Shown here in pieces: positions 14,505-63,994 of a DNA stretch of 64,000 nt (position 1 is the first letter of the stretch; every line of letters begins with the position of its first letter). Below the pieces are notes generated by a model. That model was given only the letters and a program-made list of their open reading frames with translations, had not been told where the DNA came from and ran no database searches. The translations under genes were made by a program, and so were the position numbers. Origin of the DNA: Macrostomum lignano (taxonomy: Eukaryota); assembly GCA_002269645.1 (NCBI GenBank), contig NIVC01000352.1:124001-188000 (forward strand), written 5' to 3'.

Positions 14505-14900
14505 TCATGTCAAACATAAAAGAAGCATTATGTCAAACATAAAGAAGCATCATGTCAAACATCATGTCAAACATCATGTCAAACATAAAGAAGCATCATG
14601 TCAAACATAAAAGAAGCATCATGTCAAACATAAAGAAGTATCATGTCAAATGTAAAGAAGCATCATGTCAAACATAAAAGAAGCATCATGTCAAACATAA
14701 AGAAGTATCATGTCAAATGTAAAGAAGCATCATGTCAAACATAAAAGAAGCATCATGTCAAACATAAAGAAGCATCATGTCAAACATAAAGAAGTATCAT
14801 GTCAAATGTAAAGAAGCATCATGTCAAACATAAAGAAGCATCATGTCAAACATAAAGAAGCATCATGTCAAACATAAAGAAGCATCATGTCAAACATTCT
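14505..14900. repeat. Minisatellite, 22-23-bp unit (CATCATGTCAAACATAAAGAAG)
   Basis: Tandem units within an AT-rich block. Confidence 0.95.
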
Positions 14901-21412: not shown

Positions 21413-23869
21413 CAGCGTCTGCATGCGTGCGCGGTAGATGATGATAATTACAAGCCAACCTGTCTGCTAGATGACTACGTCGCACAGCTGACGAGGTCCC
21501 AGTTTTACCCACACTTGATGAGATGCGTCCACTTAAGTAATAAATTTTATCAGCTGTGCATTTTACCCTTGTACTACGCATGTAGCTGTCTCTCTGAACC
21601 AAAAGAACAGCCCCAGCCTGTGTGTGGTTCATTTAAAAATATTGCGTATTAATTTTAGTCTGTAGAATCTTCCCTACTTAGATTTTAGGCAATGCGCGTT
21701 TCATAAGCCACATCCGAACGCTGGGTTTCAGATTTTACTGGATCTAAAACGAGAATGTTGCACAGATGCGAATTATGAAACGTGCATACCCAGTCCCGAT
21801 AAACCCGGCTTTTAACATTGATTTTTTAACTGATTTCTTCTAGACATTTTCTCAACCACCTGTCACCTGTCTGTCAGCTTTGACTGCTTTCAGCTCTGCT
21901 TCTAATGTGCCGTACCTCCTTAATAACTAATCTCCTGCCTACCTATTCAATAATGATTTGATTCATTTTGCGTGCTAAACTTCGAGTTCCCGCACCTGCT
22001 AGCTAGTACGAGTATAATATAACATTCGAAGGCGTGATTGAATATCACCAGCAATCCCTGTAGTTCCAAAAAGCTACACTGATTTTTAATAAAACCTTTC
22101 TTACTGTTTGCGAGCATGAGTCAATGCTAAGGTATAACTCGATATTTTTGTCTCTGTAATTTATTTATGTTTTGCCTGGCCAAACAAATTTTCGATTAGT
22201 ATACAAATTAAAACAAATGAAATGTCCGGGCCGTTGCTAAACCAGCAAGAGACAGAGTGATTTGCCTGAGAGCAGTTATAAGAGAGCTAATTCAAGCTTG
22301 TTGTTTGTCTCTGTTTCCAGGCAAAGCCCCGACAACGCGAACTCTTATTTAAGCTCTGACTACTCAACCAGATGGCCTAAACCGCGAGGCTACTCGTTCA
22401 ATAAACTTGTCTCGTTTTGTCCGACGTCAGACGCGTGGCTAAGATAGAAAGAGAGGCGCAAAACAATGGTGCTGCAATAGCGTAGATTACAGACGGTTGC
22501 CGAGAAAGGCATTGTGGTCTATTATACGCGTAAATTGTATCAGCTCAGTCCGTCGCCCCTATGACCCCTTGCTCACTTGAGCCACGCCCTATCTTCGTGA
22601 CGGGCGGGAGGTGGGCTGCCTGGGTCAAGCTCAATGCAGCGAATGCGGAGAAGAGAGAGAACAGAGTGAGAGCAGAGTTGAAACTGGATGAGTAGGTTGG
22701 GTAGGCAATAGCACTGCTACAGGGCATCCTGCAGGCCTATAATTTGCTGAGCACAATGCAAATGATACAGACAGAATGATGCTGTTGTCATTGGTCAATA
22801 ACGCGCCTCTTCGTCCCTCATCAGTACTCACACGGACTGCAGGCCGCGAGTGTACAGCATGAGAACAGATGGAGACTGAAGGATAGAAAACGTCTGCCGG
22901 TGAACTATGGCAACAAGGGAAAGAGGGTGAGAGAGAATTCAGCAAGCCAGCGGGCGGTAGACAATGTTATAACCTTTAAGGCAATGGAACAAAACAGCAG
23001 AACAGCAGCGAATTGAAATAATGAATTCTGAGACAACCAGCAATTTTATGTGTAATTTGTTCATTCAGGTTTCATTACAACACAAAATTAAGTGCAAATT
23101 TGCTAATATATTTTAAATTACAAAGCTGTTTGCAAAAATATGTTCTCCAGCAGGTCAATGATGGCTCATGCATCGAAGTTGTTACTGATTGTGACAGACA
23201 CCAATATCGCGTGTTCCAAACCATGGTTTTACGGCAACAATCGAAAAGTACACAAAAAGCTGTGATTGCTTTTCCTACTAGCCGTATACTTTTCCAGGTA
23301 TAGCGATATTACCATGTACCTGTCAAACACATACACTGACAACTAAAGTACATTTAAAAGTACGCTACACTCGCAAAATCGTGCAAATTTAGGAATGTTT
23401 TAGTTTCTAAAAACAAAGTTTAAATATGCCACCTGAACTCCGAATTGCAAACAAAGGAAGTGTGCAGTGCGTTGTGCATTGCTCACAAGTTTATCAAACT
23501 TGTTTCAACAGGCTGATTTTCAAGTTGGAGTTCAGATAGTCCTTGAGTGACATTGGGAATTCAATGCTGAAAACACTGAAAACTTCCCATCTCACCAAAA
23601 TCTGCACGATTCGAGAGTACAGCGTTCTTCTGCTCTAAGTTATCCATGCTCAAGCGATCACTCCTTGTAGCAGAAAAGAATATATATTTGAACCGATAAA
23701 AACTTCAGTTTACATTGGATTGTTTTTTTCAAATTGCCTAATGATAAATGACAATTTAAGCAAGCAGGAAAAAATTCATCTCATGCTAATGAATATTGGT
23801 AACATTTTTTGACCATTCGACCATCAAAGATTATCTTCGAACCCAATGCATGCGGATTTTTTTACTTTT

Positions 23870-26800
23870 GTTTCAGCCATTTCTGCCGCTGCCAGAAAAG
23901 AAGTTCATCTGAAAGAGTGAAAAAACACAATGATGGGTTCTACTATCAGTAGCATGAAGTAGAGAACAACATTTTTATATTTGCCAACGAAACTTACTAC
24001 CTGCGTATTAGCTGGAGAAGCAATAAAGTAAGCTCTGGTGAGATTCACCCAATGGAGAGTGAGACTCCTTCGATTGAGAGTGAGACTCCTTCGATTAAGA
24101 GTGAGACTCCTTCGATTGAGAGTGAGACTCCTTCGATTAAGAGTGAGACTCCTTCGATTAAGAGTGAGACTCTTTCGATGGAGAGTGAGACTCCTTCTTT
24201 TGAGAGTGAGACTCCTTCGATTAAGAGTGAGACTCCTCCGATAGAGAGTGAGACTCCTCCGATGGAGAGTGAGACTCCTCCGATGGAGAGTGAGACTCTC
24301 CTAACTAACTAACTAACGGAGAGCAAGACTCAGACTCAGAAGAGATATGATACGAGTCTTAGCCAACTGATTTCTCTGCTTCATGTTGACCGATAATGAC
24401 ATGAGGACAATCTTAAAACAGTAATAAGAGATAATAATAATACTTCAGCTATTTGCTTACCACGGTGTCGCTGAGGGCATTGAAACTGGATCGCCTTGAG
24501 GAGCCCGAGTCACCGGCAGCCCGATCCTGCAGCAGTTCAGTCATGTAGGGGTTGTTGTTGCTATTCTCAGACTTCAAGAGAACACTGCTGACTCCGCTTG
24601 AGCACAGAATCCAGTTTGCCGGACTCAATAGAAAGTTTTAGATGGACATGAATGTCATTTTACTAAGTGTAAGTCTCCAAGTGGAGCGCCTTAGTCTACA
24701 GGGGGTGGTATAGGGCATGGGGAACCCTGGTACCAAAATTTTGCCGATATGTAGTATCAATGAGGCACCATCACAAACCCAAAAAACCACAACTCCGAAA
24801 GTACTTCCCATCATAAACCCGAAATATCCCAAACCCGAAATATCCCAAACCCGAAATATCACAAACCCGAAATATCACAAACCCGAAATATCACAAACCC
24901 GAAATATCACAAACCCGAAATATCACAAACCCGAAATATCACAAACCCGAAATATCACAAACCCGAAATATCACAAACCCGAAATATCACAAACCAAAAG
25001 TATCACAAACCCGAAATATCACAAACCCGAAATATCACAAGCCAGAAGTATCACAAACCCGAAATATCCCAAACCCGAAATATCACAAACCCGAAATATC
25101 ACAAACCCGAAATATCACAAACCAAAAGTATCACAAAACCGAAATATCACAAACCCGAAATATCACAAACCCGAAATATCACAAGCCAGAAGTATCACAA
25201 ACCCGAAATATCACAAACCCGAAAAATCACACACCCGAAATATCACAAACCCGAAATATCACAAACCCGAAATATCACAAACCTGAAATATCACAAACCC
25301 AAAATATCACAAACCCGAAATATCACAAACCCGAAATATCACAAACCCGAAATATCACAAACCCAAAATATCACAAACCCGAAATATCACACACCCGAAG
25401 TATCACAAACCCGAAGTATCACAAACCCGAAATATCACACACCCGAAATATCACAAACCCGAAATATCACAAACCCGAAATATCACAAACCCGAAATATC
25501 ACAAACCCGAAATATCACAAACCAAAAATATCACAAACCCGAAATATCACAAACCCGAAATATCACAAGCCAGAAGTATCACAAACCCGAAATATCCCAA
25601 ACCCGAAATATCACAAACCCGAAATATCACAAACCCGAAATATCACAAACCAAAAGTATCACAAAACCGAAATATCACAAACCCGAAATATCACAAACCC
25701 GAAATATCACAAGCCAGAAGTATCACAAACCCGAAATATCACAAACCCGAAAAATCACACACCCGAAATATCACAAACCCGAAATATCACAAACCCGAAA
25801 TATCACAAACCTGAAATATCACAAACCCAAAATATCACAAACCCGAAATATCACAAACCCGAAATATCACAAACCCGAAATATCACAAACCCAAAATATC
25901 ACAAACCCGAAATATCACACACCCGAAGTATCACAAACCCGAAATATCACAAACCCGAAATATCACACACCCGAAATATCACAAACCCGAAATATCACAA
26001 ACCCGAAATATCACAAACCCGAAATATCACAAACCCGAAATATCACAAACCCGAAATATCACAAACCCGAAATATCACAAACCCGAAATATCACAAACCC
26101 GAAATATCACAAACCCGAAATATCACAAACCCGAAATATCACAAACCTGAAATATCCCAAACTCAAAATATCACAAACCCGAAATATCACAAACCCCAAA
26201 AGTTCTAGCAACCTCCAACGGTACTTTTTGTTTTCGGAGTTGTGATATTTCGGGTTTTTATGCCCCCCCCGTATCAATCCACATAACCTTCTAGCTTCAG
26301 AAACATTCGTGTTTTTATAAAAACCCCATCATATTAGAAACTACGCTCTCATTAGGCTTCAATGGACCGCCCATTGACCGCCCCAAGCTATTCCCGTTCC
26401 AGCGGACGCACCGGCGTGAGGTTGCACGTTGACGGTCTCCGGCTTGACAGCTTGGAGCCGGGCGGCGAGAAGAACTGATGACCTTCAGCTGTGGTGCCGC
26501 CTGCGGCAAGACTTCCGCCGCTACCGCTGCACCCGCTGCCGCCGTGAGCCCCGGCGAATGATGAAGCTACTGAGGAGCTGCCAGCTGCCGATTGCGGAGA
26601 CGTGTTGACGCTGTGCCGCCTTGGCTGCACCGCCGTCGGCAGGGAGAGCGTGAAGCTGCGGTTGGCGTCTTCCTGGAAATGTTGCCATTTTAAGATACGT
26701 TTGTAAAAAATGCTCACGTGTCTTATTGACAATACTAGTCAAAAATAACATTGAAAGAAAGTGGTGTAGGTTTAATATCCCGGGAAAAATAATACACGTA

Positions 26801-38500: not shown

Positions 38501-41500
38501 CGAGTTATACACTTTAGCCAATCAGCGACAAGGAGAGGATAAACGGGGTTAGACCCTTCAGCCAATCAGCGACGAGGAGGGTCTAAACGGGGCTTGGATC
38601 TTCAGCCAATCAGCGACGAGGAGAGGCTAAACAGGGCTTGAACCTTCAGCCAATCAGCGACGAAGCTAGACTAAAAGAGTTAGAGCCCAGTCATTTAGGT
38701 AAGAATCGATTAAGTTAAACAGGACCAATAATCTTCCGTCAAACAGCTTGCTCAAGGCAGCTGTCCTTAGCGCTTTCACTCACCTTGGAAAACAACTGCG
38801 CGGTGGGTCGGTGACGCGCCTCCCTGTCCAGCAGTTTCTCCACACTGTCGGCCAGTTCGTGGGGTAGCGCAGACAGCGCCTGGGGCAGAATTTTCGGCAG
38901 CTGCAGTGCGGCCAGTGACAGAAAGTCTGTTGAACTGCCTGCTGACACTATCTACTAGCAGTCTGCTGACACTACCTACTAGCAGCCTGCTGACACTACC
39001 TACTGGCAGCCTGCTGACACTACCTACTGGCAGCCTGCTGACACTACCTACTAGCAGCCTGCTGACACTACCTACTAGCAGCCAGCTGACACTACCTACT
39101 AGCAGCCTGCTGACACTACCTACTAGCAGCCAGCTGACACTACCTACTAGCAGCCTGCTGACACTACCTACTAGCAGCCTGCTGACACTACCTACTAGCA
39201 GCCAGCTGACACTACCTACTAGCAGCCTGCTGACACTACCTACTAGCAGCCTGCTGACACTACCTACTAGCAGCCTGCTGACACTACCTACTAGCAGCCT
39301 GCTGACACTACCTACTGGCAGCCTGCTGACACTACCTACTAGCAGCCTGTTGACACTACCTACTAGCAGCCAGCTGACACTTACCTACTGGCAGTCTGCT
39401 GACACTACCTACTGGCAGCCTGCTGACACTACCTACTAGCAGCCTGCTGACACTACCTACTAGCAGCCAGCTGACACTACCTACTAGCAGTCTGCTGACA
39501 CTACCTACTAGCAGCCTGCTGACACTACCTACTAGCAGCCTGCTGACGCTACCTACTAGCATTCTGCTGACACTACCTACTAGCAGCCTGCTGGCACTAC
39601 CTACTGGCAGTCTGCTGACACTACCTACTAGCAGCCTGCTGACACTACCTACTGGCAGCCTGCTGACACTACCTACTGGCAGCCTGCTGACACTACCTAC
39701 TAGCAGCCTGCTGACACTACCTACTGGCAGCCTGCTGACACTACCTACTAGCAGCCTGCTGACACTACCTACTAGCATTCTGCTGACACTACCTACTAGC
39801 AGCCTGCTGACACTACCTACTAGCAGCCTGCTGACACTACCTACTGGCAGCCTGCTGACACTACCTACTAGCAGCCTGCTGGCACTACCTACTGGCAGTC
39901 TGCTGGCACTACCTACTGGCAGTCTGCTGACACTATCTACTAGCAGCCTGCTGACACTACCTACTAGCAGCCAGCTGACACTACCTACTAGCAGCCTGCT
40001 GGCACTACCTACTGGCAGTCTGCTGACACTACCTACTAGCAGCCTGCTGACACTACCTACTGGCAGCCTGCTGACACTACCTACTGGCAGCCTGCTGACA
40101 CTACCTACTAGCAGCCTGCTGACACTACCTACTGGCAGCCTGCTGACACTACCTACTAGCATTCTGCTGACACTACCTACTAGCATTCTGCTGACACTAC
40201 CTACTAGCAGCCTGCTGACACTACCTACTAGCAGCCTGCTGACACTACCTACTAGCAGCCTGCTGACACTACCTACTAGCAGTCTGCTGACACTACCTAC
40301 TGGCAGCCTGCTGACACTACCTACTGGCAGCCTGCTGACACTACCTACTAGCAGCCTGCTGACACTACCTACTAGCAGCCTGCTGACACTACCTACTAGC
40401 AGCCAGCTGACACTACCTACTAGCAGCCTGCTGACACTACCTACTAGCATTCTGCTGACACTACCTACTAGCAGCCTGCTGACACTACCTACTAGCAGCC
40501 TGCTGACACTACCTACTAGCAGTCTGCTGACACTACCTACTAGCAGCCTGCTGACACTACCTACTGGCAGCCTGCTGACACTACCTACTGGCAGCCTGCT
40601 GACACTACCTACTGGCAGTCTGCTGACACTACCTAACAGCAGCCTGCTGACACTACCTACTAGCAGCCTGCTGACACTACCTACTAGCAGCCTGCTGACA
40701 CTACCTACTGGCAGCCTGCTGACACTACCTACTAGCAGCCTGCTGACACTACCTACTAGCAGCCTGCTGACACTACCTACTGGCAGCCTGCTGACACTAC
40801 CTACTGGCAGCCTGCTGACACTACCTACTAGCAGCCTGCTGACACTACCTACTGGCAGTCTGCTGACACTACCTACTGGCAGCCTGCTGACACTACCTAC
40901 TAGCAGCCTGCTGACACTACCTACTAGCAGTCTGCTGACACTACCTACTAGCAGCCTGCTGACACTACCTACTGGCAGCCTGCTGACACTACCTACTGGC
41001 AGCCTGCTGACACTACCTACTGGCAGCCTGCTGACTGTGAAGGAGTCGCCTACCTGCTAGCACTAGTACTGACACTGCTGACACTACCTACTAGCAGCCT
41101 GCTGACACTACCTACTAGCAGTCTGCTGACACTACCTACTGGCAGCCTGCTGACACTACCTACTGGCAGCCTGCTGACACTACCTACTGGCAGCCTGCTG
41201 ACACTACCTACTGGCAGCCTGCTGACACTACCTACTAGCAGCCTGCTGACTGTGAAGGAGTCGCCCGCAGAAATCGAGGATCAAAATCATAAATGGGGAT
41301 CAAGGAAAGGCAGCTGGGCTGCCAGAAAGCCCCTCCAGACATCGTCATCCTTCAATTTTCCTGCCTCCTTAAAAAAGCTCTAAAAACTGCTCCCTGATCC
41401 CCATAATCCCCATTTTTCGCCACTCGCAGGCATGTCCTTTGTTGATGTCGATAAACCCGGGCAGCTCTGTTTAATTAAAGATCCCCGACTAAGACTCCTA

Positions 41501-44500
41501 TCTATCTCCTTAGAATCGCCATATCCCCGTCCGTCGTTCTCCCTCTTTAATTTTCGAGTCCCTCATCTTTCTCGACTCTCAAGCTGCTCAGCTGGATTCC
41601 CTGCTTTCTGGGAAATACTATTAGAAGCCGATAGCTGAGAGACTGGAGGTTTAAAAAAGGCCCAGTCAGGCCTCTTTGCTCAACTGTGAGATTGGAAAAC
41701 GCAGAGATGGAGAGAACGGCGAGGACATCTGCCCTGCCCCAATGCAGCAGCGCGAGATAAGTGCTTTTAAATGCTCTGAAAGCTGCCATTTGCTAAGTGC
41801 CCGGCCCATCTCAAATAGAGGCGTACGAATTTATCAATGCATAGGAATATTAATTAATCAGGCTAATGAGATGCTGATACTAGCTGCCCAAATTGCTAAT
41901 CGATAAACACTATCCGTTAATCGATAAACACTATCAGTTAATCGATAAACACTATCCGTTAATAGATAAGCACTATCCGTTAATCGATAAATACCATCCG
42001 TTAATAGATAAACACTATCCGTTAATAGATAAACACTGTCCGTTAATCGATAAACACCATTCGCTAATCAATAAACACTATCCGTTAATAGATAAACACT
42101 GTCCGTTAATCGATAAACACTATCCGTTAATCGATAAACACTATCCGTTAATAGATAAACACTATCCGTTAATCGATAAACACCATTCGCTAATCAATAA
42201 ACACTATCCGTTAATAGATAAACACTATCCGTTAATCGATAAACACTATCCGTTAATCGATAAACACTATCCGTTAATTGATAAACACTATCCGTTAATA
42301 GATAAACACTATCCGTTAATAGATAAACACTATCCGTTAATTGATAAACACTATCCGTTAATAGATAAACACTATCCGTTAATCGATAAACACTATCCGT
42401 TAATAGATAAACACTATCCGTTAATCGATAAACACTATCCGTTAATCGATAAACACCATTCGCTAATCGATAAACTACATTTGATACTGGACAATCACCG
42501 ATCGCTACTCCGACTCCGTAAGCCCTAATCCATGCACAATAACCCGAAAATCTCAATCTGATAAACTCCAATCACCTCCGCAATCCTTCGCTGGTAATTC
42601 TGCGCATTCCGCTGCGACTCCAGCAAAGAGACGCCGGCATTGAACACGGCGTGAATGACCAGACCAAAGGAGAACATGTCACAGGCCTGAGTAGCCCTGC
42701 CGTGCAACTGCAAGTCGGGAGCCATGAAGTCTAGATCCGGCTGAGCCATCTTCGACACCTTGGCCGACCATTGGGTGTAATTGTAGGCGTCCTGGTGAGG
42801 GCGATTATGGGGAAGTTGTACTTTGTGTTTGAATTGATCACAAAAATTAAGTAGAAAATAATTTTGATAAGACTCGATCGCAATGTGCAAAGTGTCCAGC
42901 AGACTCTCCCATCCTGGTTCGATTCGATTCATTTGGGGCTTTGAAAACGAAATCTTTCCGGGGGTAATCGTGCGATGAGCCCCACCCCCCCCCCCCAAAG
43001 CACAGAGAAAGTCAGGGCCGCTGTACACCCTATGTGAGTGTCTGTGAGTGCATGCCAGAGTGCAGTATTGGCGCGCTTGCATGTGTGCTCAGGAGTCAGC
43101 GGAACGGGCAGAATTGCCGTCAGAGCTGGTTGTGGGACCGATGTTCTCCAGGGTGCCCACGGCTTTCCTGCGAATGCTGTTCTTATATCGTATTAGCCTC
43201 AGTGTAGTTGTATCCTCCACCTTCAATTCATAATCAGCCAACATGCTAACTTTCTAGGTCAATATATAAGTACGAGCCGTACCTGAGGGAGGTTTTACAA
43301 CGGACCCTTTGGGCTCATAAAACTCGATCGAGTTGTACTTATAATAGACAGAAGAATAGTGGCACGAACTCTGCAGAATCCCAAGCCCTGACTAACAGAG
43401 GCGGAGTCGCGCTTTGTGTTCGCAGTTTTTTCTACGCTATTCATTCTCGAGCACGTGGGCTCGGCCTGAAAATCCCTGCGGAAGCCGGCTTGTAACGGGC
43501 CAATTACTGGCCTTGTCGGCCTGACGAAGCCTTTCATTGCAAAAGTGCAAAGTCGCCCTGCCGGGAACCGTTTAAGCCAGCTGGAGGCTTCCGCATTCTG
43601 TGCGTGCTATGCCAGGCCTCGCGCTATGAGATGCACTTTACACTGTGCCGACGTCTGCAACCCCTGCCCTCTGTGTACTGCCGCTCGCTCTCATGTGATA
43701 GAAGACTCGGGTCTGATTCCTTAGGTTTACATATCAATAGTTCATTTTTGAGTTCGGCGATGGACTTTGAATGCGCAATTAACGTCAAGATGACGCCAAT
43801 GCCAACCATTTGAGGGACAGGAATAAAAAGTTGTGTGCACTCTGTCTTATTGCGTAAGTACGAGGTAGTTATTCTCATTCAAGACAGAATCACCCGTTCT
43901 CACGTGAGTTTCTGGAGATTTTTCCACAAAGCCGAGGCCGGAGAGTTTCCAGCAGCCGCGCTTGGTGACAATAATGGAGAAGAGGCTGAGATTGCCATGG
44001 ATCACGCGTTGGGTGAAGTGCAGGTACTTCAGTGCTTCGTTGATCTGCAAAAATCGTTTTCTGTGGCTCAAAACGCGTGTACCAGGGATCCTGACCAGAC
44101 CAATCAGACACAATGATGACGTAATAATCAGACACAATGATGACGTAATAATCAGACACAATGATGACCCAATAATCAGACACAATGATGACCCAATAAT
44201 CAGACACAATGATGACCCAATAATCAGACACAATGATGACCCAATAATCAGACACAATGATGACCCAATAATCAGACACAATGATGACCCAATAATCAGA
44301 CACAATGATGACCCAATAATCAGACACAATGATGACCCAATAATCAGACACAATGATGACCCAATAATCAGACACAATGATGACCCAATAATCAGACACA
44401 ATGATGACATAATAATTATTCACAAGGACAGCCCGATCAGACGCAATGATGACCTATCAATCAGACACAATGACAGACTGATGACGCAGGGACAGACTGA

Positions 44501-47500
44501 TCAGACACAAGGACAGACCGATCAGACACAAGGCCAGACCGATCAGACACAAGGCCAGACCGATCAGACACAAGGCCAGACCGATCAGACACAAGGCCAG
44601 ACCGATCAGACACACGGACACACCGATCAGACACAAGGACAGACCGATCAGACACACGGACACACCGATCAGACACAAGGACAGACCGATCAGACACAAG
44701 GACAGACCGATCAGACACAAGGACAGACCGATCAGACACAAGGACAGACCGATCAGACACAAGGACAGACCGATCAGACACAAGGCCAGACCGATTAGAC
44801 ACAAGGATAGACCGAGCAGACACAAGGCCAGACCGATCAGACACAAGGACAGACCGATCAGACACAAGGACAAACCGATCAGACACAAGGACAGACCGAT
44901 CAGACACAAGGACAGACCGATCAGACACACGGACACACCGATCAGACACAAGGACAGACCGATCAGACACAAGGCCAGACCGATAAGACACAAGGACAGA
45001 CCGATCAGACACAAGGACAGACCGATCAGACATAAGGCCAGTGGCACAAACCTGATAGATTCCTTGCTTGATCTCTAGCTCGCCAGAGAAGCCCTCCTGC
45101 AACGGTGGCCGAAGTTGGGGCACTGTAAAGCTGCAATCACGATGCGGACTTGAGACGCAGTCACTCACCTTGATTTCCTGCGGCACGCTGGGCACTCTGT
45201 CGCAGTTTCCCAGAAAGTTGGCCAGGCTGCCCCAGACGGGCTCGGTGGCGAACGCCAGGCTGTCCCTGCGGTGCGCATCGAAGGGGAATCGGGGAGTGAC
45301 GACTCGATCAGTCAGCCGGTTTACTTTAGTTTGCACGCTTCGGTAACCGAAAACCGAGTGAGCAACAAAGGATTGCGTGACACCGAGTTTCGAGTTAACA
45401 AAAGAAACGACAATCATCTCGATAGTTAGTGATGTGGAAATCATTTTTTTCTAAAGTTAGGAGAAAATTGAAACACGCTTTCAGATGCCATGACTTGACG
45501 TTGTTCAATGGGCAGATGTGCAACCGACAGCTCAGCCGCAGCTATTGCGCGGCGCATCTGAAGGCTGCTACGGCTGTACAGTCCAAGGACTGTCGGGTCG
45601 CCACACACAGCCTCAATTACCCCAGCTAATGCTGGCACCCATTTTACAACTGTGTGAACTGAAGCAATGCAGAGTTATAAGTGCCTTGCTCAAGGACACA
45701 AATTGTTCTGAGTAGATCGAGAATCGAACCCCCGACCTTCCAGTCGTGAGTCCGACGCTCTAAACACTAGGCTACAACCCTCAACCAACAAACGTGGAGA
45801 GTAGTGTCTGGGATAGCCGATTGTAGGTATTACCTTGTCCTATACCGGTATACGAGCTCTTGAGGGCTCACCCCCCGGGGAGCAAAGTGCCTGACAAGTG
45901 AGAATGGCAGAGCCCTGTCACCCTGTGCAAGCTGTAGCAGTGTGCACCGGTGTGTGAGTGTTCTCAGACCCGCACCAGGGGAGGCAAGGAAGGGGGGCAT
46001 TTTAAACCCGGAACATCACAAACCCGAAATATCAGAACTCTGTAAACCAAAATACCGTTGGGCAACTTTCGGAGTTATGATATTCCGGTATTGTGATATT
46101 TCGGGTTTATGATATTCCGGTTTTGTGATATTTCGGGTTTATGATATTCCTGGTTTATGATTTCCGGGTTTATGATATTCCGGGTTTATGATATTCCGGG
46201 TTAATGATATTCCGGGTTTATGATTTCCGGATTTATGATATTTTAGGTTTGTGATATTCCGGGTTTATGATGGGAAGTACTTTCGGAGTTGTGATTTTTC
46301 GGGTTTGTGATTTTTCGGGTTTGTGATGGCAACCCGCCGGAGTGCCCCTAATAAGCTGTAAAAGATGATGGCGCCCCCTTCTCAGCAGTAGTGGTGCCCC
46401 TGGTTCCTCAACAACTACTTTGACACCAACGAGGTCTGGCGCCTCTGGTGCTGGCGGCCCCAGTCGCAATTCCAGACAATGTCATAGGGGGGGGGGGGTA
46501 AGTTTTAATACCCAGAATTGTCGCTGCACAGTCAGGGTGATTATCAACCGGGGAAAATATGGGTAGAAAAGGTTAAACAAAAAAGCTTACAACGCCAGGC
46601 ATAGATGCATGAGCTCGGATAAAAAAGTGTGCAGGTCTTCATCTACCTGAATACAGCTTCACCCACTCTCCTTTTCGCAGAGAGCTCCATTAGGAATGAG
46701 GTCTTATGTTTATTAGAGACCTGCCTGTCTGCCTGCCCGCCTGTCTAATTGCAGCCTGTGTTTGTCAGCGATTAACCCAGCAGCCCTTCCCGCGCTTCTG
46801 CTCTCAGGACAGCAGCTGACATCGGCATATGGAAAATGCCATAGAAGGCATTGAGAAGACAGCGAGGCTGGGAATAATGAGAGACGCTGCATCCTTTTGT
46901 CTTTGTATCTACCCTGTATTTAGAGTAGCCTAATATCCCCTAAATTCGCTGCATGTCGAATCAAAATTAATTCATAATTTCAAAAATTCGAGTACTGAAT
47001 TCCCAATTATCTCACCTACTGAACTTGCAAATCTCAATTACATGTACGAGTCAAATACAGTCTAAAGACAATGCTAGACTAGATTAGAACTAGTCTAGAC
47101 TAGACTAGACTGGACTAGACTAGACTGGACTAGACTAGACTAGACTAGGCTAGACTAGACGTCAACTAGACTAGATTAGAACTAGTCTAGACTAAACTGG
47201 ACTGGACTAGACTAGACTGGACTAGACTAGACTGGACTAGACTAGACTAGGCTAGACTAGACATCAACTAGACTAGACATCAACTAGACTAGATTAGAAC
47301 TAGTCTAGACTAAACTGGACTAGACTAGACTAGACTGGACTAGACTAGACTAGGCTAGACTAGACGTCAACTAGACTAGATTAGAAGTAGACTACAGGCG
47401 TAGACTAGATTTCTAATCCGATTGGATTTGACTTGAAATTCCGACTGAAAAAATCCTGCGGGAAATTCTCGTGCTCCCGACAAAGCACCTGCTTGCTGCA

Positions 47501-53130: not shown

Positions 53131-54149
53131 AAGAGTTAGCCAAAAATGTGAAAAACAAGGACCAAACGTGTTTTTTCAGAAGAATTTTCTTTTTCTTAAG
53201 TGAAGAGTTTCGATTTTATAATATTCTCTTTTGCATTTTACTGACTGGAAAATCACTGCCGGGATTGCAGTCAAGCAGCCAGAGCGGTCTTGTTTCTTGT
53301 TTTCTTTGGCAGAAACAGGTCCACGGAAGGAAGTCGGTTGACATCAGCTTGAACGATATGTCAGAACGATATATAATTCAGAATTGACGTTTAAACACGA
53401 AAGCAGCGTTTTGATACCTATTAAAGTCCTTGACTATTTTAAAGCAAGATTATAATGAACAGAAACTTCTACTTGGAGCAGTAAGTAGTCGGTATAGACT
53501 TTGACTTGACATTGTTATTCAGTAAATTAATACGCTTGCTCACTATTACAATTTGATCGATATGATAGTTTATCGTCGCCCAACAGAGTACCAATCTCTG
53601 GGTGTCTCAATGCTGCATTTGCTGGCAGAGACAATAAAAAAACACAAGAAATTTATATTATAAAAGCATCTGGGATCAGTGCTAGCGCGAGTCCTTCCTT
53701 CTCGTGGCCATGACTGTACCTATTCGTGGGTTTCCAGTCCAGACGTTAAATGGTAACCCCGAGGTATCCAGAGAAACGGAAGGATAAAATTGATCTCTAT
53801 TGGGTTATTTTTGCATTCAGGCACGGTTTCTGCTTCTAAACAATTGTTGTGCACTATTAATTTGCTTTACAGAAACCAAATTTCTAAACCGCTGTGTTTT
53901 GCTGGGCCAATGTACACCGCACAGCGCACAGTGGCTTAGGAGTATCTTGTGCAAGGAAAGTGCAGCACTTGCTCGACAAGCAAGCGGCATTGGTTGGCTT
54001 GTCTGTTGCCAAATTATTATTTCTCTCAACTGCGCATAAATCTGTTTACCGGGCCCAGCCTCTCGGGCGCGCTCGGGCACAGGGTCAAACGAAATATCTT
54101 CTTCGTGTTTGAATAGAACTGCAAGCCTTAAAAACTCCGAGCATAGAGC

Positions 54150-56047
54150 ATGTCGGACGGTAATCAGGACGACAATTGCAGAGTTGACAGCATCAGAAGC
54201 GACAGCAGCGACAGCAGCGGCGGCAGCGGCGGCAGCGATGCACAATATAACGGCTTGTGCTCGAATTTCGACAGGATCAGCGTGCAGGATCCGGTTGAGG
54301 CCAACGAGGATGTGGTGCTGTTGAAAGGAAAGCCGCCGGGTCAGAAGAACAGAAGCTCCACGTGTCAGATTGCAACCAAGGAGAAGCTGAAAGAGATGCT
54401 GGTGAAGCGACAGCCGATTGACTACACAGTGGATATCAAGAGTTTGGACACGTAATGCACATCTAGGGTCAGGGCTTATGTATTTGAGCGACTAAACTCT
54501 AGGGGTTACATCTAGATATTACCTATAGTCTTGACTCCCATACAACTTCCATCTTCATCCCTACCATCCTCATCATCCGTATTTAGATTGCTCTTGACGG
54601 CACTTCCGACCAGTCTGTATTAGAAAGTCAGGGCCGCTGTACACCCTTTGTGAGCGTGTGTATGAGTGCGTGCTTGCGCTTGAATGTGCTCAGGAGTCAG
54701 CGGAATTGGCAGAATTGCAAGATTTCAAGGCTTATAGGGGAATTTCTGAGATGTCACTAGATTGCTAGAAACTCCTATCTCTCAAACCTATCTCTCCTAC
54801 ACAAATTCACAACTCTCTTTCAGCCCACTTCATCGGTTCCTTGAGGCACCTGAGAATCAACTGAAGTCGAGCAGCGAACTGTTGAGGCAGCTAAAGAGCA
54901 TTCTGACTGAACTGGACAAGCTTGGATTCGTGTCCGTCTACGTTAATATGCCCAACAAGTTTGGACGGGTGAGAATTTAGGGCAGGGGTCGGCGAACTCC
55001 GGCCCGTGGGCCACATGCGGCTCGCAAAGCCTCTCTATCCGGCCCTCGCCTCCTTTGAAGCTTCACATTAGCAACACGGGCCGCACAATGTTTAAGTCTC
55101 TCTCAGCGCTCTTCTCTCTTATCTCCTCCCTCCGCTCCTCTTCTCTCCTCTCTCCTCTTTTCTCTGCTCTCCTCTCCTCTCCTCTCCTCTCCTCTCCTCT
55201 CCTCTCCTCTCCTCTCCTCTCCTCTCCTCTCCTCTCGTCTCTTCTCGTCTCATCTCGTCTCATCTCCCCTGATCTCCTCCTCTCCTCTACTTTCTCCTCT
55301 CCTCTCTCTCATCTCTCCTCTCTCCTCTCTCCTCTCTCCTCTCTCTTCTTCTCTCCTCTCTCTTCTTCTCTCTTCTTCTATTCATCACTCCTCTCCCCTC
55401 TCGTCTCCTCGCTTCTCCTTTATTCTCTCGCCTTTCCTTTTCTGATCTCCCTACTATTGTCTCTTCTTTCCCTGCTCCGGTCCCTGCTTTCCCGACCCCT
55501 GCTTTAGGGCAATGGCAAAGTCGTATAACATTGAAAACCTCGCTCCAAAGATTTTGAAACCATATACCTTAACCCAAACACTCCTGTGAAGTAATTTCCC
55601 CAACCAAGTCACCATCTGAATCCAATAAAAGCAATTCGTAGCACTAACTGGTAGCAAATATTATGCTCTACGCGTATTAAGACTCCGCTGTCCCTGTGTC
55701 TAAAGTCGGAGCGCCTCATTGAGCTGATCTCTCCGCTAGTACTCCACGGCGCCCAGATGCATCACCTGTGCGGCGACCTAAACGAGCGATGCAACCATCT
55801 GCACTACGCTATGCTGAAGTCTTCGCCGCGCGTCATCAACGCTATCCTAGACGAGGTGCTTAACCAGGACCCGTTCGGAGCGGACGGCATGTACGCCTTG
55901 AACAAGCTCTACCAGACGCCAAAGGCTTCGCTGCAAGGCCGAATCAAGCAGGCCGCTGATCTTCCACACGTGCAGGACGAGTTGCGCCGCATCCTGGACA
56001 GAATCCCATGCTACCCGCCTGTTGAAGGGGTGTCTCTGCAGCTTTGA
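54150..56047 (+). CDS. Small ankyrin-repeat protein with Ser/Asp-rich N-terminus. Exons 54150-54451, 54824-54968, 55682-56047; ~270 aa
   Basis: Phase 2 and phase 0 GT-AG introns join to give the ankyrin-like motifs LDTPLHRFL and NKFGRTPLSLCL, plus NHLHYAM. Confidence 0.72.
54625..54720 (+). mobile_element. SINE 3' fragment (same family as 26885-27145)
   Basis: GGGCCGCTGTACACCCTTTGTGAG..GCTCAGGAGTCAGCGGAATTGGCAGAATTGC. Confidence 0.65.
54983..55501. mobile_element. hAT (Charlie/Buster-like) MITE containing a (CTCCT)n microsatellite
   Basis: TIR CAGGGGTCGG ... CCGACCCCTG; 8-bp TSD ATTTAGGG / CTTTAGGG (7 of 8 match). Confidence 0.85.
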
Positions 56048-56139: not shown

Positions 56140-58790
56140 TACGGGTTCGTGTCAGTGTCTCGTTCTCCCAATGTCCTGATTCACTGTTTGTGCTGTCTCG
56201 CGACCTCAGTGTGTGTCTCATTTTCCAATGTCCCGATTCACTGTTTGTGCTGTCTCATGACCTCAGTGTGTGTCTCATTTTCCAATGTCCTGATTCACTG
56301 TTTGTACTGTCTCATGACCTCAGTGTGTGTCTCATTTTCCAATGTCCCGATTCACTGTTTGTGCTGTCTCATGACCTCCGTGTGGGTCTCATTTTCCAAT
56401 GTCCCGATTCACTGTTTGTGCTGTCTCATGACCTCCGTGTGGGTCTCATTTCCCAATGTCCTGATTCACTGTTTGTGCTGTCTCATGACCTCCGTGTGGG
56501 TCTCATTTTCCAATGTCCTGATTCACTGTTTGTGCTGTCTCATGACCTCAGTGTGTGTCTCATTTTCCAATGTCCCGATTCACTGTTTGCGCTGTCTCAT
56601 GACCTCAATGTGTGTCTCATTTCCCAATGTCCTGATTCACTGTTTTGTACTGTCTCATGACCTCCGTGTGGGTCTCATTTTCCAATGTCCCGATTCACTG
56701 TTTGTGCTGTCTCATGACCTCAGTGTGTGTCTCATTTTCCAATGTCCTGATTCACTGTTTGTACTGTCTCATGACCTCAGTGTGTGTCTCATTTTCCAAT
56801 GTCCCGATTCACTGTTTGTGCTGTCTCATGACCTCCGTGTGGGTCTCATTTTCCAATGTCCCGATTCACTGTTTGTGCTGTCTCATGACCTCCGTGTGGG
56901 TCTCATTTCCCAATGTCCTGATTCACTGTTTGTGCTGTCTCATGACCTCCGTGTGGGTCTCATTTTCCAATGTCCTGATTCACTGTTTGTGCTGTCTCAT
57001 GACCTCAGTGTGTGTCTCATTTTCCAATGTCCCGATTCACTGTTTGCGCTGTCTCATGACCTCAATGTGTGTCTCATTTCCCAATGTCCTGATTCACTGT
57101 TTTGTACTGTCTCATGACCTCCGTGTGGGTCTCATTTTCCAATGTCCCGATTCACTGTTTGCGCTGTCTCATGACCTCCGTGTGGGTCTCATTTCCCAAT
57201 GTCCTGATTCACTGTTTGTGCTGTCTCATGACCTCAGTGTGTGTCTCATTTTCCAATGTCCTGATTCACTGTTTGTGCTGTCTCATGACCTCAATGTGTG
57301 TCTCATTTCCCAATGTCCTGATTCACTGTTTTGTACTGTCTCATGACCTCCGTGTGGGTCTCATTTTCCAATGTCCTGATTCACTGTTTGCGCTGTCTCA
57401 TGACCTCCGTGTGGGTCTCATTTCCCAATGTCCTGATTCACTGTTTGTACTGTCTCATGACCTCCGTGTGTGTCTCATTTTCCAATGTCCCGATTCACTG
57501 TTTGTGCTGTCTCATGACCTCAATGTGTGTCTCATTTCCCAATGTCCTGATTCACTGTTTTGTACTGTCTCATGACCTCCGTGTGGGTCTCATTTTCCAA
57601 TGTCCTGATTCACTGTTTGTGCTGTCTCATGACCTCAATGTGTGTCTCATTTTCCAATGTCCTGATTCACTGTTTGTGCTGTCTCATGACCTCAGTGTGT
57701 GTCTCATTTTCCAATGTCCTGATTCACTGTTTGTGCTGTCTCATGACCTCAATGTGTGTCTCATTTCCCAATGTCCTGATTCACTGTTTTGTACTGTCTC
57801 ATGACCTCAGTGTGTGTCTCATTTTCCAATGTCCTGATTCACTGTTTGTGCTGTCTCATGACCTCAATGTGTGTCTCATTTCCCAATGTCCTGATTCACT
57901 GTTTGTGCTGTCTCGTGACCTCAGTGTGTGTCTCATTTTCCAATGTCCTGATTCACTGTTTGTACTGTCTCATGACCTCCGTGTGGGTCTCATTTCCCAA
58001 TGTCCTGATTCACTGTTTTGTACTGTCTCATGACCTCCGTGTGGGTCTCATTTTCCAATGTCCCGATTCACTGTTTGCGCTGTCTCATGACCTCCGTGTG
58101 TGTCTCATTTCCCGATGTCCCGATTCACTGTTTGTGCTGTCTCGCGACCTCAGTGTGTGTCTCATTTTCCAATGTCCCGATTCACTGTTTGTGCTGTCTC
58201 ATGACCTCCGTGTGGGTCTCATTTTCCAATGTCCTGATTCACTGTTTGTACTGTCTCATGACCTCAGTGTGTGTCTCATTTTCCAATGTCCTGATTCACT
58301 GTTTGTGCTGTCTCATGACCTCAATGTGTGTCTCATTTCCCAATGTCCTGATTCACTGTTTGTGCTGTCTCGTGACCTCAGTGTGTGTCTCATTTCCCAA
58401 TGTCCTGATTCACTGTTTGTACTGTCTCATGACCTCCGTGTGGGTCTCATTTCCCAATGTCCTGATTCACTGTTTTGTACTGTCTCATGACCTCCGTGTG
58501 GGTCTCATTTTCCAATGTCCCGATTCACTGTTTGCGCTGTCTCATGACCTCCGTGTGTGTCTCATTTCCCAATGTCCTGATTCACTGTTTGCGCTGTCTC
58601 ATGACCTCAGTGTGTGTCTCATTTTCCAATGTCCCGATTCATTGTTTGTGCTGTCTCATGACCTCCGTGTGGGTCTTATTTTCCAATGTCCTGATTCACT
58701 GTTTGTGCTGTCTCATGACCTCCGTGTGGGTCTCATTTTCCAATGTCCTGATTCACTGTTTGTACTGTCTCATGACCTCAGTGTCTCATT
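56140..58790. repeat. Minisatellite, 57-bp unit, ~46 copies, with higher-order periodicity
   Basis: TGTCTCATGACCTCAGTGTGTGTCTCATTTTCCAATGTCCTGATTCACTGTTTGTGC. A +1 T variant recurs at 229/457-bp spacing. Confidence 0.97.
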
Positions 58791-59202
58791 ATTAAATTTT
58801 CCAATTCGGAAAGCCAGTCAATGTAAATGCCTTTTGACTGGTCATTAATTTTTTCTCGTTTCGATTAAATTTATTTTCACGTTATTAATATTTAAGCTTA
58901 CATGCGCTTAAAAGACAGTGACACCGCTTGCTGCAAAGTAAACGCTGACACTCCACGATTCCTACCCGGCTAACAGCTTTTTCGAAAACCTGTTCCTAAC
59001 TTTGAAAACAGATTGTTTAGACATTCGGAGCATCGAAGCAAAATGAAAAATATATATTTAGATTCTTGTGCTCGCAAAAATAAAACATCAGAACGAGTAA
59101 AATTACAGAAAAACTGTTATTGTATTATTAATATCAAGGAATTTTATTTGTATCAATACAAACGGTAAATAAAGGTAATATTTATGAGTACATCGTTGAT
59201 GC

Positions 59203-62200
59203 TCAGGAGCGCCGCTCCGGCACCAGACTCCACTGCATCAGCGAAGCGGCCTCTCTGTCCGTGACCAGCAGTCTGGAGTCGCCGAATGCGAACATCAAAT
59301 CGCGAACTGACGACACCAGAGCGTCGGAGGTCACGCACTGGCTCTGTATGGTGGTAGATTGGAAGGGTGGGGGTTTAAGCACAGGGCGGGTTCGTTTATA
59401 TACGAGCCACATACAGGGGTTAACAAACTCCGGCCAGCAGGCCACATGCGGCCCGACAAGCCTCTCTATTTGGCCTTTGGGTCTGTAGGAAATCCATAAT
59501 AGCAATCCAGCGCACTCAAGGTTCGTGTCTCTTCTCTGATATCTCCTCTCCTCTCCTCTTCCCTACTCTCCTCTCTCCTCTCCTCTCCTCTCCTCTCCTC
59601 TCCTCTCCTCTCCTCTCCTCTCCTCTCCTCTCCTCTCCTCTCCTCTCCTCTCCTCTCCTCTCCTCTCCTCTCCTCTCCTCTCCTCTCCTCTCCTCTCCTC
59701 TCCTCTCCTCTCCTCTCCTCTCCTATCCTCTCCTCTTCTCTCCCCTCCTCTCCTCTCCTCTCCTCTCCTCTCCTCTCCTCTCCTCTCCTCTCCTCTCCTC
59801 TCCTCTCCTCTCCTCTCCTATCCTATCTTATCCTATCCTATCCTATCCTCTCCTTTCCCTTCTCTTCTCTCCTCTCTTCTCCATTTTCCTCTCTCTTCTT
59901 CTCTCCCTTCTCTCCTCTCATTTCCCTTCTCCTCTCTTCTCTCCTCTCTCTACTCTTCTCTCCACTGATTTCTCATCTCTCTTCTCGTCTCCAGTGTGAG
60001 TTTTACATGTAAAAACCAAATGAAAAAGACAAGCCTTAATCTCGAGTCACCGATAATCACTCAGCTTAATCTGTAGCATCAACTAATAGTACGCTGCTAA
60101 AGTGCACGCCGTTTTTCAGGCTCCCTCTCCGGAATGGAACCCTGATTCTCCGTTACCCGTTATAACCATGGTAGGCAAATCACCTAAAACCATCGTAAGT
60201 TGATAGGGCAGACACTTGAAAGATACTTCGCCCGCGCAGAGGCCATACGATCAGCACAAAAGTTATCCAGAGTCACCACGCAGACGCGGCAAGCCCCGAT
60301 TGGTTTTGATCTAATAAATGCGCCCCTCCCGTGAGGTCAGGGCTTGTAAGCACGTAATAGCTCTAGATGTTCCACAGTTATCCGAGTAGGATGAGACAAT
60401 CTAAGGAACCATACATGTAGCTGATTTAATGAGCCATTCACGGTTTCACGCCATTTCATGCCATTCGCGGTTTCATGTAGAACTGACATATACAATGTTA
60501 ACTTATAAAACTTTAGCGGCGTACTATTAGTTGATGCTACAAATCACCCTTAACGAAGCTACTAAGGTATAATGAAACTTGATGTCTTGAGGGTGGGTTA
60601 CTTTTCGAAACGAGTCACAAATGTCTATGCTTCATTTGTACTCTATACTACGAGTAGTTGATCGCAATACCCTTTGATTGCATCGAAATGACCTTTTAAG
60701 GTTACCTCAAAGTAAACCATAATTTGTGGGATAGGGAAGTAAGGCCATTGCAAAATAACCCAGCCAGATGATATTCCTTCGTCTACCACTCAGCTTTGCT
60801 GGCTCACCTGTAGTGGATGCGTTGGATAGCGGAAGATGCTCACTTGTCCTGCGCTGTCGCCAGCACAGAGCAGGTCTCCGTGACCGGACAGGCACGAGGC
60901 TGTGATGCCAGTGTCTGAACTGGCTTGATGAAGCTGCCAAGCTGCAGCGTGATAGTAACTCAGTGAGCATGTCTCGGTGGAGAATCTCACGTTACTGACG
61001 GATTCCGCGCCAGGGACCTCAGACATGTTTGGCACCGACCCTGCGTGCAGAGTTAAAGCACCAGCGAACAGCTAGAAAGACTCGCGGCTTTTTGACTTGT
61101 AAACTCGACAAGAATCCAATTTTCATCACAGACTTACAGAATCTGACTTCCAAGTCCTCAGACTGACTTCGAAGGGTGGCTGAATCCACTGAAAAGTCCA
61201 GCCGGACCACCGGACTTGAGTGGCCGGTCAGAGTTCCTTGACGGTATTTTCGATAAACGAGTCCGTTGTCTTCGACAGACATCATGTAGATTCGCCCGTC
61301 GCTGGTGCCCAGGGCCAGCAGACGGCCGTCTTGGCAGCACGGAGTTGGGTTAGGCGGGTACTTTATAGACGCGTCTCATCTCAGGTTTGAAAACAAAACT
61401 TATTGAACTAAACAGAAGCGTCGAAGAAGGAAAGAACCTTGATGGCATCAATCATAACAGTCGCATTGCTGATTTTGATAGCTTTGTACGCTCGTATTCA
61501 AATTACTGTCAGCAACATTTTTCCATTACAAAGGAATTCCAAAGCATGTCACTTACTGCTGCTAAAACGGACGCACACAACGGCCTGGCCTCGTTCGGTG
61601 ACCTGACAGGATATGGCGTACTCCCCGCGCGCATGCTGCAGTGCCACTATCCGACCCGTGGCCGTGCCCAGCAGTAGCAGGTGGCCTCGAGGATGGTAGG
61701 CCGCGCTAGAGCAGGCGTCTTCGACGGCAACCCGCCAGACCAAGCGGCACTGACTGGCCGACCAACGGCAGACTGACATGTCGTCGTCGGCGCCGCCGCA
61801 GGTTGCCAGATCCGGCTCACTCGGATGGGCGCTCACAATCAAACCGTTAGCGTTTGAGGACGATTTATGACCCTGTTGTGCGAGTATTAATTCAAAAGGT
61901 AGAGATATGACCCCTTATTTTTTTAATGTAAAACTGTGCCGCACCTGTACAAGGCAGAAAAACTGATCGTGCAGAGAGCCCTCTAGGATGCAATTGCCAG
62001 TTGTGGCCACCACCAGCCGTCCGTCTAGACTACGCGGATGCTTCAGTGCCAATGCGGCAATGTCCTCCGAGACCTGGCCGCTGGTCTGAATTCAGAGAGT
62101 TATTTCAGGACCTATGTAAGTTCAGGACACCAGGGCACAACCAAGAGCAAAATCTGACGAATTACCAATGCCTCCTTGACATGACTGTAGCCATTCAGTG

Positions 62201-63994
62201 TGTCCCAGACGTGAATTCGCTTTGCCGACACCGAAATCAGAGCGCCATCGCCCAGAATGTACATGCATTGGATTGCCTCCTGTGTGAAGTTAGCATATAA
62301 ATTATACGAAAATTTATCGAATAGGCACATTAGCTAGAGTTAGTATTTTAATTTTAATTTTTAGTATAATATTTAGTATATCTAGATATTACACACCGAA
62401 TGCGCGTGATTCAGTCGTTCCACTGGTCTGAGCACGAATGCGTCATCTTGGTCGCGACACCACAGCTGCAGGCGGCCAGCCGAGTCCCCGGTTATTACGT
62501 TGCCGACAAGATCGAAGGCCACCGCCGTCACCTCGTCTTTCTGGCTTGGTGCCGCTGATCCAGGTGCAAACACACCGCTCTTTTTGTCGCGCAGTGCCCG
62601 GCTCCGGCCCGCACTGTCATGGAAGATGCGCCAGAAGCTCGGTCGCTCGGCGCCCACAGTCACGATTATTGAGTCGTCCTCCGGGTGGAACACAGCTCGA
62701 CTGATTTGATCTCGCGCAGTCTGCGACTTCAGCACCTCCCGACGGGCTGCCCAGTCAAAGACAGTCAACGTCTGTCGATGTCCGGGCGGCTTCGGCGAGT
62801 CCACAGCGAGCAGGTAAGCTCCGAGGCTTTCACCCGAAAATGAAATCGACGTGATGCCAGTCTGCAGATGCGGCTCGGACAAGACAACCCGAGTCTCCAG
62901 ACTCTCGGCGTCCCAGATGCGGATTTGGACTGGAGCTCCGGATCGGGATGCCGCCTGGCCAGAGGCGATGTAGGCATTCACAGGGTGGGCTGCGGCGCTG
63001 CGGATTTTTGGGTAAGCAGAGCGACTCAGTCTGGGTGTGGCCTAGGAGAAAAAGCCAAGCCAAGGCAAGTCATACCCGTACAGTACAACCGACAATAATA
63101 CAACCGACAATAATACAACGCAAATGCCTTGCTTTTCCTCAGTTCCAATCTCACGACCATCCTGGGTTCTTCGTCCTCAGATAATTCGCCAGGCGAGGGG
63201 CTTTCTAGGCTCTGCTAAAAACCAAGGCATAGACCCGAAGCTATCAAGACGTCAGTCGCTGACCCCTGAGCCCCTGATCACCCTCGCATCTTCGTCTCAG
63301 TGGCTGCATGGCTTCACTGCCCCACAACTTACCACGTGACCCGTGCAGTGTGCTCAGTGTAGTGCCTCTGCCGGTGCCGCTTTGAGTCCAGTAGGATCAG
63401 AACATTTCCGGAGGCGTACAGCAGGTCCCCGGTAGGCAGCGCCAGCAGGCCCGCCGAGCTATTGCAGCCGTAGACCCAATCCAATTGGAGAGACACGTCC
63501 GGTGGCTGCAGCTGTTGACGACTCGGCACTGTTGCTGTGGGAGCTGGGAAAGCTGGAAGTAGGGGGCGGTTGAGGGTGGAATGGGCAGCTGGAGCAAGTG
63601 CTTGTTGATGATGGTTGAAGTAAAAAAACAAGCAGCAGCTCACTGTGTAAGGTTCCGCGGATTCTGACGGTAGCGGCTGGAGGTTTCTGCATCGACTCGC
63701 GACCCGACAGCTGCGGGAGCTGCTGGAAGCTGCCAGTCTCTTCATCTTCACTGTTAACAGCGTCGCTGTCTTCTGCTGCTTCGTATCTGCCGGCTGTGAG
63801 ATGAGGGGCAAAACATAAAAAATAGCTGGCCCAGTGAAAACTAGCACAGTGCTTTCTGTTATATTAGAGAAACTCCATACCAACTGCCGGGCTCCTGTCT
63901 CCCAGTTGCTGCTGCTGCTGAACCTGAAGCTGCTCCTGCTGGAGTTGAAGCAGCCGCAGTCGCTGCTGCTCATCAAGCCGATTCTCCTCGCCAT
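59203..63994 (-). CDS. Echinoderm microtubule-associated protein-like (EML/EMAP) HELP-WD40 protein, multi-exon. Checked exons include ..-63333, 62997-62397, 62279-62166, ..-60808, 59343-59203
   Basis: HELP motif LQLDWVYG, HYTEH, CAAAHP..IASGQ..IRIWD, VFDW, ITGDSAG, GHSSPVVRLDFS, CAGDSAGQVSIFRYP, terminal SLMQWSLV. Splice phases are consistent where checked. The 5' end may extend beyond the window. Confidence 0.9.
59414..59990 (+). mobile_element. Partial hAT MITE left end followed by a (CTCCT)n microsatellite
   Basis: CAGGGGTTAACAAACTCCGGCC..GGCCACATGCGGCCC..GCCTCTCTAT matches 54983-55050; no right TIR found. Confidence 0.65.
60072..60541. mobile_element. Non-autonomous TIR element (TGT...ACA, Ginger-like) carrying an 18S rDNA fragment
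   Basis: 32-bp TIRs TGTAGCATCAACTAATAGTACGCTGCTAAAGT (60072-60103) and ACTTTAGCGGCGTACTATTAGTTGATGCTACA (60510-60541), 1 mismatch; 4-bp direct repeat AATC on both flanks. Confidence 0.8.
60105..60475 (-). pseudogene. 18S rRNA 5'-domain fragment (rDNA pseudogene)
   Basis: Minus strand reads GAAACCGCGAATGGC..CTCATTAAATCAGCTA..GGATAACTGTGG..CTAGAGCTA..GCATTTATTAGATCAAAACCAATC..GTCTGCCCTATCAACT..CCTACCATGGTTATAACGGGTAACGG..TCCGGAGAGGGAGCCTGA, i.e. conserved eukaryotic SSU sequence. It is partial, diverged and internally duplicated. Confidence 0.92.

Follow-up and report, generated by a model that had tools for sequence, protein, structure and literature searches.

A 470-bp insertion with inverted-repeat ends and an 18S rRNA gene interior in the last EML intron of Macrostomum lignano

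An insertion of 470 bp, bounded by inverted repeats and a 4-bp target-site duplication and filled almost completely by a decayed fragment of the 18S rRNA gene, was found in the last intron of an EML gene in Macrostomum lignano. On balance we read it, with somewhat better than even confidence, as one inserted copy of a small non-autonomous inverted-repeat DNA transposon whose interior has been replaced by rDNA. The initial annotation had proposed a transposon anatomy of this kind with an interior almost all 18S-derived, and the parts recovered in the window (the whole 64-kb stretch of DNA analysed) agree with it:

60068-60071, no strand: target-site duplication, left copy AATC (direct reading)
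60072-60541: inserted element, 470 bp, inside the last EML intron
60072-60103, plus strand: left terminal inverted repeat, 32 nt, TGTAGCATCAACTAATAGTACGCTGCTAAAGT (repeat and mismatch scans)
60107-60493, minus strand: 18S rRNA gene fragment, 5' domain, approximately model positions 53-405 (Rfam RF01960; decayed pseudogene)
60433-60486, minus strand: internal duplication in the 18S fragment, GAAACYGYGAAUGGC about 2.5 times with a 27-nt period (repeat finder and Rfam alignment)
60510-60541, minus strand: right terminal inverted repeat, 32 nt, ending ...GATGCTACA (repeat and mismatch scans)
60542-60545, no strand: target-site duplication, right copy AATC (direct reading)

The two arms are complementary at 31 of 32 positions with a single mismatch and have the termini TGTAG...CTACA, as had been described for them (32-bp repeats with one mismatch, TGT to ACA); the terminal sequence of the element begins TGTAGCATCAAC.... 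Read together with its flanks, ...CAGCTTAATC/TGTAGC...GCTACA/AATCACCC..., the element is abutted at each end by a perfect AATC at the coordinates listed, which confirms the claimed duplication, and the uninterrupted target predicted as the exact empty site is ...CAGCTTAATCACCCTT.... Owing to the partly palindromic flanking duplication, the repeat finder carries the arms on to 35 nt (94%); no base pairing of the arms was found past 32 nt. With up to three mismatches allowed, the terminal 23-nt sequence has just two sites in the window where none is expected (100 shuffles). When all inverted repeats of the window were compared, the arms proved to be its sole long non-satellite inverted repeat, and a scan for a TGT...ACA inverted repeat with a 4-bp duplication returned the element alone in the window and nothing in each of 20 shuffled windows. 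The DNA directly flanking the element is unique in the window and in three further stretches of M. lignano DNA (L001-L003), the only recurring sequence being the TCTCC microsatellite farther left.

A terminal stem was predicted in the transcript (fold z = -5.3), and by this prediction the ends can pair into a 32-bp stem within the EML pre-mRNA. As a separate observation, a 14-mer at 60649-60662, TACGAGTAGTTGAT, lies 108 bp to the right of the element in the same orientation as the right-arm sequence TACTATTAGTTGAT, which it matches at 12 of 14 positions. By a rough estimate about 0.1 such matches arise by chance, and the 14-mer may be a remnant of an earlier end, or it may be meaningless. One further TGT...ACA candidate (L002:3044-5931) was rejected, since it consists of a dispersed repeat present in two inverted copies, with homology that continues beyond TGT.

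The interior was identified by a match to the Rfam family SSU_rRNA_eukarya (RF01960) at 60093-60493 on the minus strand, covering model positions 53-429 of 1831 (190.5 bits, E 2.1e-53). The final 20 model columns (410-429) align poorly, with six of 13 conserved positions wrong and a 7-nt gap, and they overlap the terminal repeat; we therefore place the true end of homology at about 60107-60110 (model position about 405), which leaves about 4-16 nt between the 18S piece and each repeat. No second Rfam family was detected at the repeat or in the 48 nt preceding the SSU match. The units of the internal duplication (60433-60448 and 60460-60475) are 16 nt long, 94% identical and spaced by 27, and they appear in the Rfam alignment as a 24-nt insertion. 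In the well-aligned core nine of 104 highly conserved SSU positions are altered (about 9%), and the 5' edge is worse (four of ten). The cargo is thus a pseudogene, as both the altered positions and the duplication indicate: a functional 18S gene is about 1.8 kb at full length with its conserved core intact, and only model positions 53 to about 405 are present here, interrupted by the 24-nt insertion. A diverged 18S 5'-domain fragment with a small duplication is what had been reported for the interior, and that description holds.

We found no relationship between the arms and the missing 5' end of the 18S gene. Local alignment against 18S positions 1-52 gave no signal over 2000 shuffles, the fraction of shuffles scoring at least as high as the real sequence being 0.87 for the repeat and 0.97 for the first 48 nt. 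The reference used here was the universal 18S 5' sequence, which agrees with the translation of a spurious 18S ORF (P0123). The shuffle test and the unique flanks together speak against arms that belong to native rDNA or to the flanking DNA, the origin that the initial annotation had named as fatal to its proposal. They bear also on the idea that a broken chromosome once captured a stray rDNA pseudogene fragment and that its repair created both the inverted ends and the short direct repeat. Such an event would agree with the single copy found in the window and L001-L003, and genomes are known to contain dispersed fragments of rDNA pseudogenes (PMC10946416), but it leaves unexplained why identical foreign ends of 32 nt, unrelated to the 18S fragment and the flanks, stand in inverted orientation and are precisely abutted by a 4-bp duplication. 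We regard a one-off capture as improbable.

The state of the cargo also bears on a trivial explanation. A library molecule likewise consists of an insert between two inverted sequences, and no contaminant is more abundant than rRNA, so that an rRNA insert between adapter-like inverted sequences might have been misjoined into the contig. Several observations speak against such an assembly or library artefact: real rRNA would show neither the strong decay nor the internal duplication of this cargo, the arms differ from each other by one base, and a chimera would not be expected to leave a clean 4-bp duplication of an otherwise continuous intron. The repeat is also not known to resemble any of the common sequencing adapters, and we consider this origin very improbable indeed. 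If all of the cargo decay had followed the insertion, about five arm mismatches would be expected where one is observed (Poisson P about 0.03), an arithmetic that is weaker if some of the conserved-position changes are lineage-specific. Since the arms differ at only one of 32 positions, the cargo probably decayed largely before the present insertion, either in a propagating element or as an rDNA pseudogene prior to capture.

The gene that houses the element was delimited on the minus strand from open frames, splice sites and protein profiles:

59203-59343, minus strand: last EML exon, SQCVTSDALVSSVRDLMFAFGDSRLLVTDREAASLMQWSLVPERRS then stop codon (ORF translation, splice sites, EML1 alignment)
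59344-60807, minus strand: last EML intron, phase 0, 1464 nt (990 nt minus the insertion), GT at 60807-60806 and AG at 59345-59344
59542-59963: (TCTCC)n array within the last EML intron (tandem-repeat scan)
3' end at 60808, minus strand: penultimate EML exon, inside open frame 60793-61071 (second beta-propeller, PF23414, profile 146-223, E 1.4e-10)
61022-61375, minus strand: EML second propeller, profile positions 90-152 (Pfam)
61549-61842, minus strand: EML second propeller, profile positions 5-92 (Pfam)
62382-62981, minus strand: EML first beta-propeller (Pfam)
63329-63994, minus strand: EML HELP-motif match, weak and under Pfam's cut-off (Pfam)

The frame of the penultimate exon ends ...CTACAG/GTGAGC at 60808/60807, and an in-phase acceptor, ...CATACAG/AGCCAG, lies at 59344/59343 in front of a terminal exon that ends ...ASLMQWSLVPERRS-stop. 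Joined over this junction, the peptide matches the C-terminal end of human EML1 (4CI8 residues 575-654 of 655, E 3e-4). Donor, in-phase acceptor and EML1 alignment therefore place the element in the last EML intron, where it starts 266 nt past the donor with the 18S piece in EML sense. The initial annotation had put it in an EML intron in rRNA sense within the minus-strand pre-mRNA, and the splice sites, the frames and the EML1 alignment bear this out. Most likely the element is carried in this intron as a neutral passenger; it is a single intronic copy without evident effect on the EML gene, and in that respect a curiosity.

The preferred transposon origin would involve the following steps. 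A DDE transposase or integrase supplied in trans would bind the 32-nt inverted ends TGTAG...CTACA and make a staggered cut of 4 nt at the target in the last EML intron, the repair of which would give the AATC duplication. Both the TGTNR ends and the duplication length of 4 bp suggest an enzyme of the integrase type (Ginger2-like). The interior would most likely have been acquired in a longer parent, where repair of an excision gap may have switched template to the abundant rDNA and so replaced the interior of the parent. Gap repair with template switching is well established as an origin of non-autonomous elements whose interior has been replaced. The element is short (470 bp, under the 800 bp usual as a bound for MITEs) and non-coding, its longest ORF being 52 aa, and it has both the inverted repeats and the target duplication of a non-autonomous element. 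It has no subterminal sequence outside the 32-nt repeats, which counts against the transposon reading. Integrase-type inverted-repeat elements that carry fragments of host genes do exist, as exemplified by GingerRoot (PMC6839031).

The class of the element was compared with the Ginger-type assignment of the initial annotation, which stands in part. On the one hand, TGTNR ends and 4-bp duplications are the signature of Ginger1 and Ginger2 (PMC2836005), and the TGTAG termini, the inverted repeats and the 4-bp target duplication seen here are shared with Ginger1 and with Ginger2/TDD, the latter having duplications of 4 bp (metazoan) or 5 bp (PMC2836005, PMC10045372). On the other, Ginger1 duplicates CCGG (75%) or CCGT/ACGG (24%) and has repeats of about 40-270 bp, while Ginger2 has repeats of about 50-180 bp and prefers AT-rich 6-bp targets, RTATAY (PMC2836005). 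The present repeats, at 32 nt, are shorter than both ranges, the duplication is AATC, and the target hexamer TAATCA is AT-rich but fits RTATAY poorly, at two of six positions in a single insertion where a preference needs more. No integrase-type transposase with the ends of this element is known, unlike the case of Ginger1 and Ginger2, and selected ORFs, both close to the insertion and in other parts of the window, showed no integrase domain in Pfam scans. The text of the founding Ginger paper mentions no flatworm (PMC2836005). IS481EU elements also have TGT...ACA ends with 4 bp and are known only from parabasalids, and LTRs typically share TGTNR-type ends and 3-6 bp duplications (PMC10045372). 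Given the missing Ginger1 and Ginger2 features and ends that are common to LTRs, we therefore leave the element unclassified, as one with inverted repeats and ends of the integrase type that may be Ginger2-like.

The ends raise a second origin, that of a solo LTR. An LTR retrotransposon or TRIM-like element would have taken an 18S fragment into its LTR, as could happen when reverse transcriptase switches template to rRNA, inserted by means of a retroelement integrase, and been reduced to a single LTR by LTR-LTR recombination. TG...CA ends of the TGTNR type with duplications of 3-6 bp are a hallmark of LTRs (PMC2836005, PMC10045372) and are present here, 470 bp is a normal LTR length, and rRNA-derived modules are known in LTRs, namely 5S in Cassandra and Ajax (PMC10946416). 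Many LTR retrotransposon families also occur in M. lignano (PMC12801592). A 32-nt inverted repeat matching at 31 of 32 positions nevertheless far exceeds the short inverted ends of LTRs, and within the window there is no directly oriented second copy and no nearby retroelement coding sequence. Inverted ends of LTRs are usually short. We judge both the LTR identity and this route of insertion and recombination to be unlikely, though the solo LTR is a serious competitor of the transposon reading.

Among known elements, Pack-MULEs and GingerRoot resemble the one described here in being non-autonomous inverted-repeat elements with an acquired interior (PMC6839031), its host origin being putative in the present case; they differ in carrying fragments of protein-coding genes rather than an rRNA gene, and the present element has no subterminal sequence of its own. 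Daphnia Pokey/mPok (piggyBac) is likewise a DNA transposon or MITE containing rDNA-derived sequence (PMC10946416 Table 2). Pokey carries intergenic-spacer repeats, targets TTAA in 28S and has a known transposase, whereas the M. lignano element contains 18S coding sequence and lies in an ordinary intron with AATC as its target duplication. Mobile elements with rRNA fragments further include SINE28 (28S), the 5S-derived SINEs and the Cassandra and Ajax TRIMs with 5S in their LTRs (PMC10946416), the last two being the model for the solo-LTR explanation. All of these are retroelements, and in those with 5S the module provides a Pol III promoter, in contrast to the 18S 5' domain without known promoter role and the inverted rather than direct terminal repeats of the M. 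lignano element.

Neither the 23-mer (up to three mismatches) nor blastn of the whole element revealed a second copy, whether in the 64-kb window or in a further 63.9 kb from M. lignano. The sample amounts to about 128 kb in all (window and L001-L003), from which a family of hundreds of copies would escape. An unrelated dispersed repeat of about 280 bp occurs three to four times across the same 128 kb, and the absence of a second copy beside this recurrence thus indicates that the element does not belong to the class of very abundant repeats. The recently mobile element spreading rRNA sequence that the initial annotation had proposed gained no support from this DNA. Multiple dispersed copies with different duplications, the remaining mark of a MITE, were not seen within the 128 kb, a sample far too small to decide the point. 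It is possible, though we lean against it, that the element is a member of a live or recently live Macrostomum inverted-repeat family whose whole cargo is the 18S fragment.

Searches in other collections were also negative. An exact 21-mer and 28-mer of the element gave no match in JGI metagenome contigs, and a scan of viral contigs for element sequence gave none. A single match in GTDB genome contigs, in a Clostridia MAG, was rejected as it did not extend past 21 nt and had no partner, with about 0.27 matches expected by chance. A 68-aa frame over the junction of repeat and 18S gave seven weak matches in an exhaustive search of protein representatives; the best were ordinary 18S ORFs, none of the seven reached the repeat or the duplication, and the candidate was set aside. 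Exact look-ups returned no match for the 52-aa ORF or for three flanking ORFs, and the EML gene of this locus has no entry in the protein database searched.

A 2024 review tabulates rDNA-derived sequences in transposable elements with 5S, 28S and intergenic-spacer modules and lists no 18S-carrying DNA transposon (PMC10946416), and our literature search for inverted-repeat elements carrying 18S found none. The cargo is therefore uncommon and the kind of element ordinary, which makes the insertion a modest curiosity. If the family is real, it would provide the first known case of 18S coding sequence being carried and scattered by a DNA transposon, and 18S would join 5S, 28S and the intergenic spacer as rRNA cargo of mobile elements. 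Many transcripts would then contain rRNA segments enclosed by a 32-bp stem, in sense or antisense according to the orientation of the copy, and the family would offer one route for the dispersal of rDNA-like fragments through the genome. A real family would also bear on rDNA FISH, copy-number estimates and the filtering of rRNA reads, as well as on the reading of rRNA-matching small RNAs in a regeneration model organism. Small-RNA consequences of the element itself are speculation.

Besides the EML gene, three genes were annotated in the window:

103-4501, plus strand: G-protein alpha subunit gene (Pfam G-alpha, E 2e-24)
20063-21412, plus strand: ceramide glucosyltransferase gene (protein match)
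42525-45444, minus strand: gene with ORF 42525-43082, weak protein-kinase match under Pfam's cut-off

The 286-aa exon of the ceramide glucosyltransferase gene (20063-20920) is 99% identical to M. lignano BOX15_Mlig021767g2. The Mlig_3_7 contig NIVC01002988.1 (L001), reached through UGCG, is collinear with window positions 14600-26200 with differing lengths of the satellite arrays. Identity reaches about 95% in the gene region and about 80-90% over most of the flanking DNA, and for this reason L001 is taken as a homeolog or divergent copy rather than the same sequence, which fits the hidden allotetraploidy reported for M. lignano (PMC12801592). A paired homeologous copy should be expected for the EML locus too; L001 itself stops well short of the insertion site.

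Copies of the 280-bp dispersed repeat are 76-83% identical and lie at window 45511-45793 and at L002 2950-3300, 5709-5999 and 8336-8408. Two inverted copies in L002 bracket an annotated 144-aa gene. The outer part of the repeat contains the tRNA-T-arm-like sequence GGTTCGATTCC, and ARAGORN finds no tRNA in L002; the repeat may be a SINE-like family.

The UniRef M. lignano entry A0A1I8FV75 (P0122, 'FH2 domain-containing protein', 839 aa) joins plus-strand exons at 54147-56044 to a frame at 59132-59485 that runs antisense to the last EML exon, and this model has the look of a mis-predicted chimera. For the real plus-strand gene at 54-56 kb, Pfam gives no match. Minisatellites are very dense in the window, with more than 25 arrays of 15-62 bp period, several of them at 21-24 bp, and a 2.6-kb array with periods of 57/229 bp lies just upstream of the EML 3' end. 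Examples are found at 476-1780, 2546-3159, 10329-11193, 11866-12889, 24810-26200, 38937-41250 and 56155-58784, and these arrays yield long spurious ORFs in all frames.
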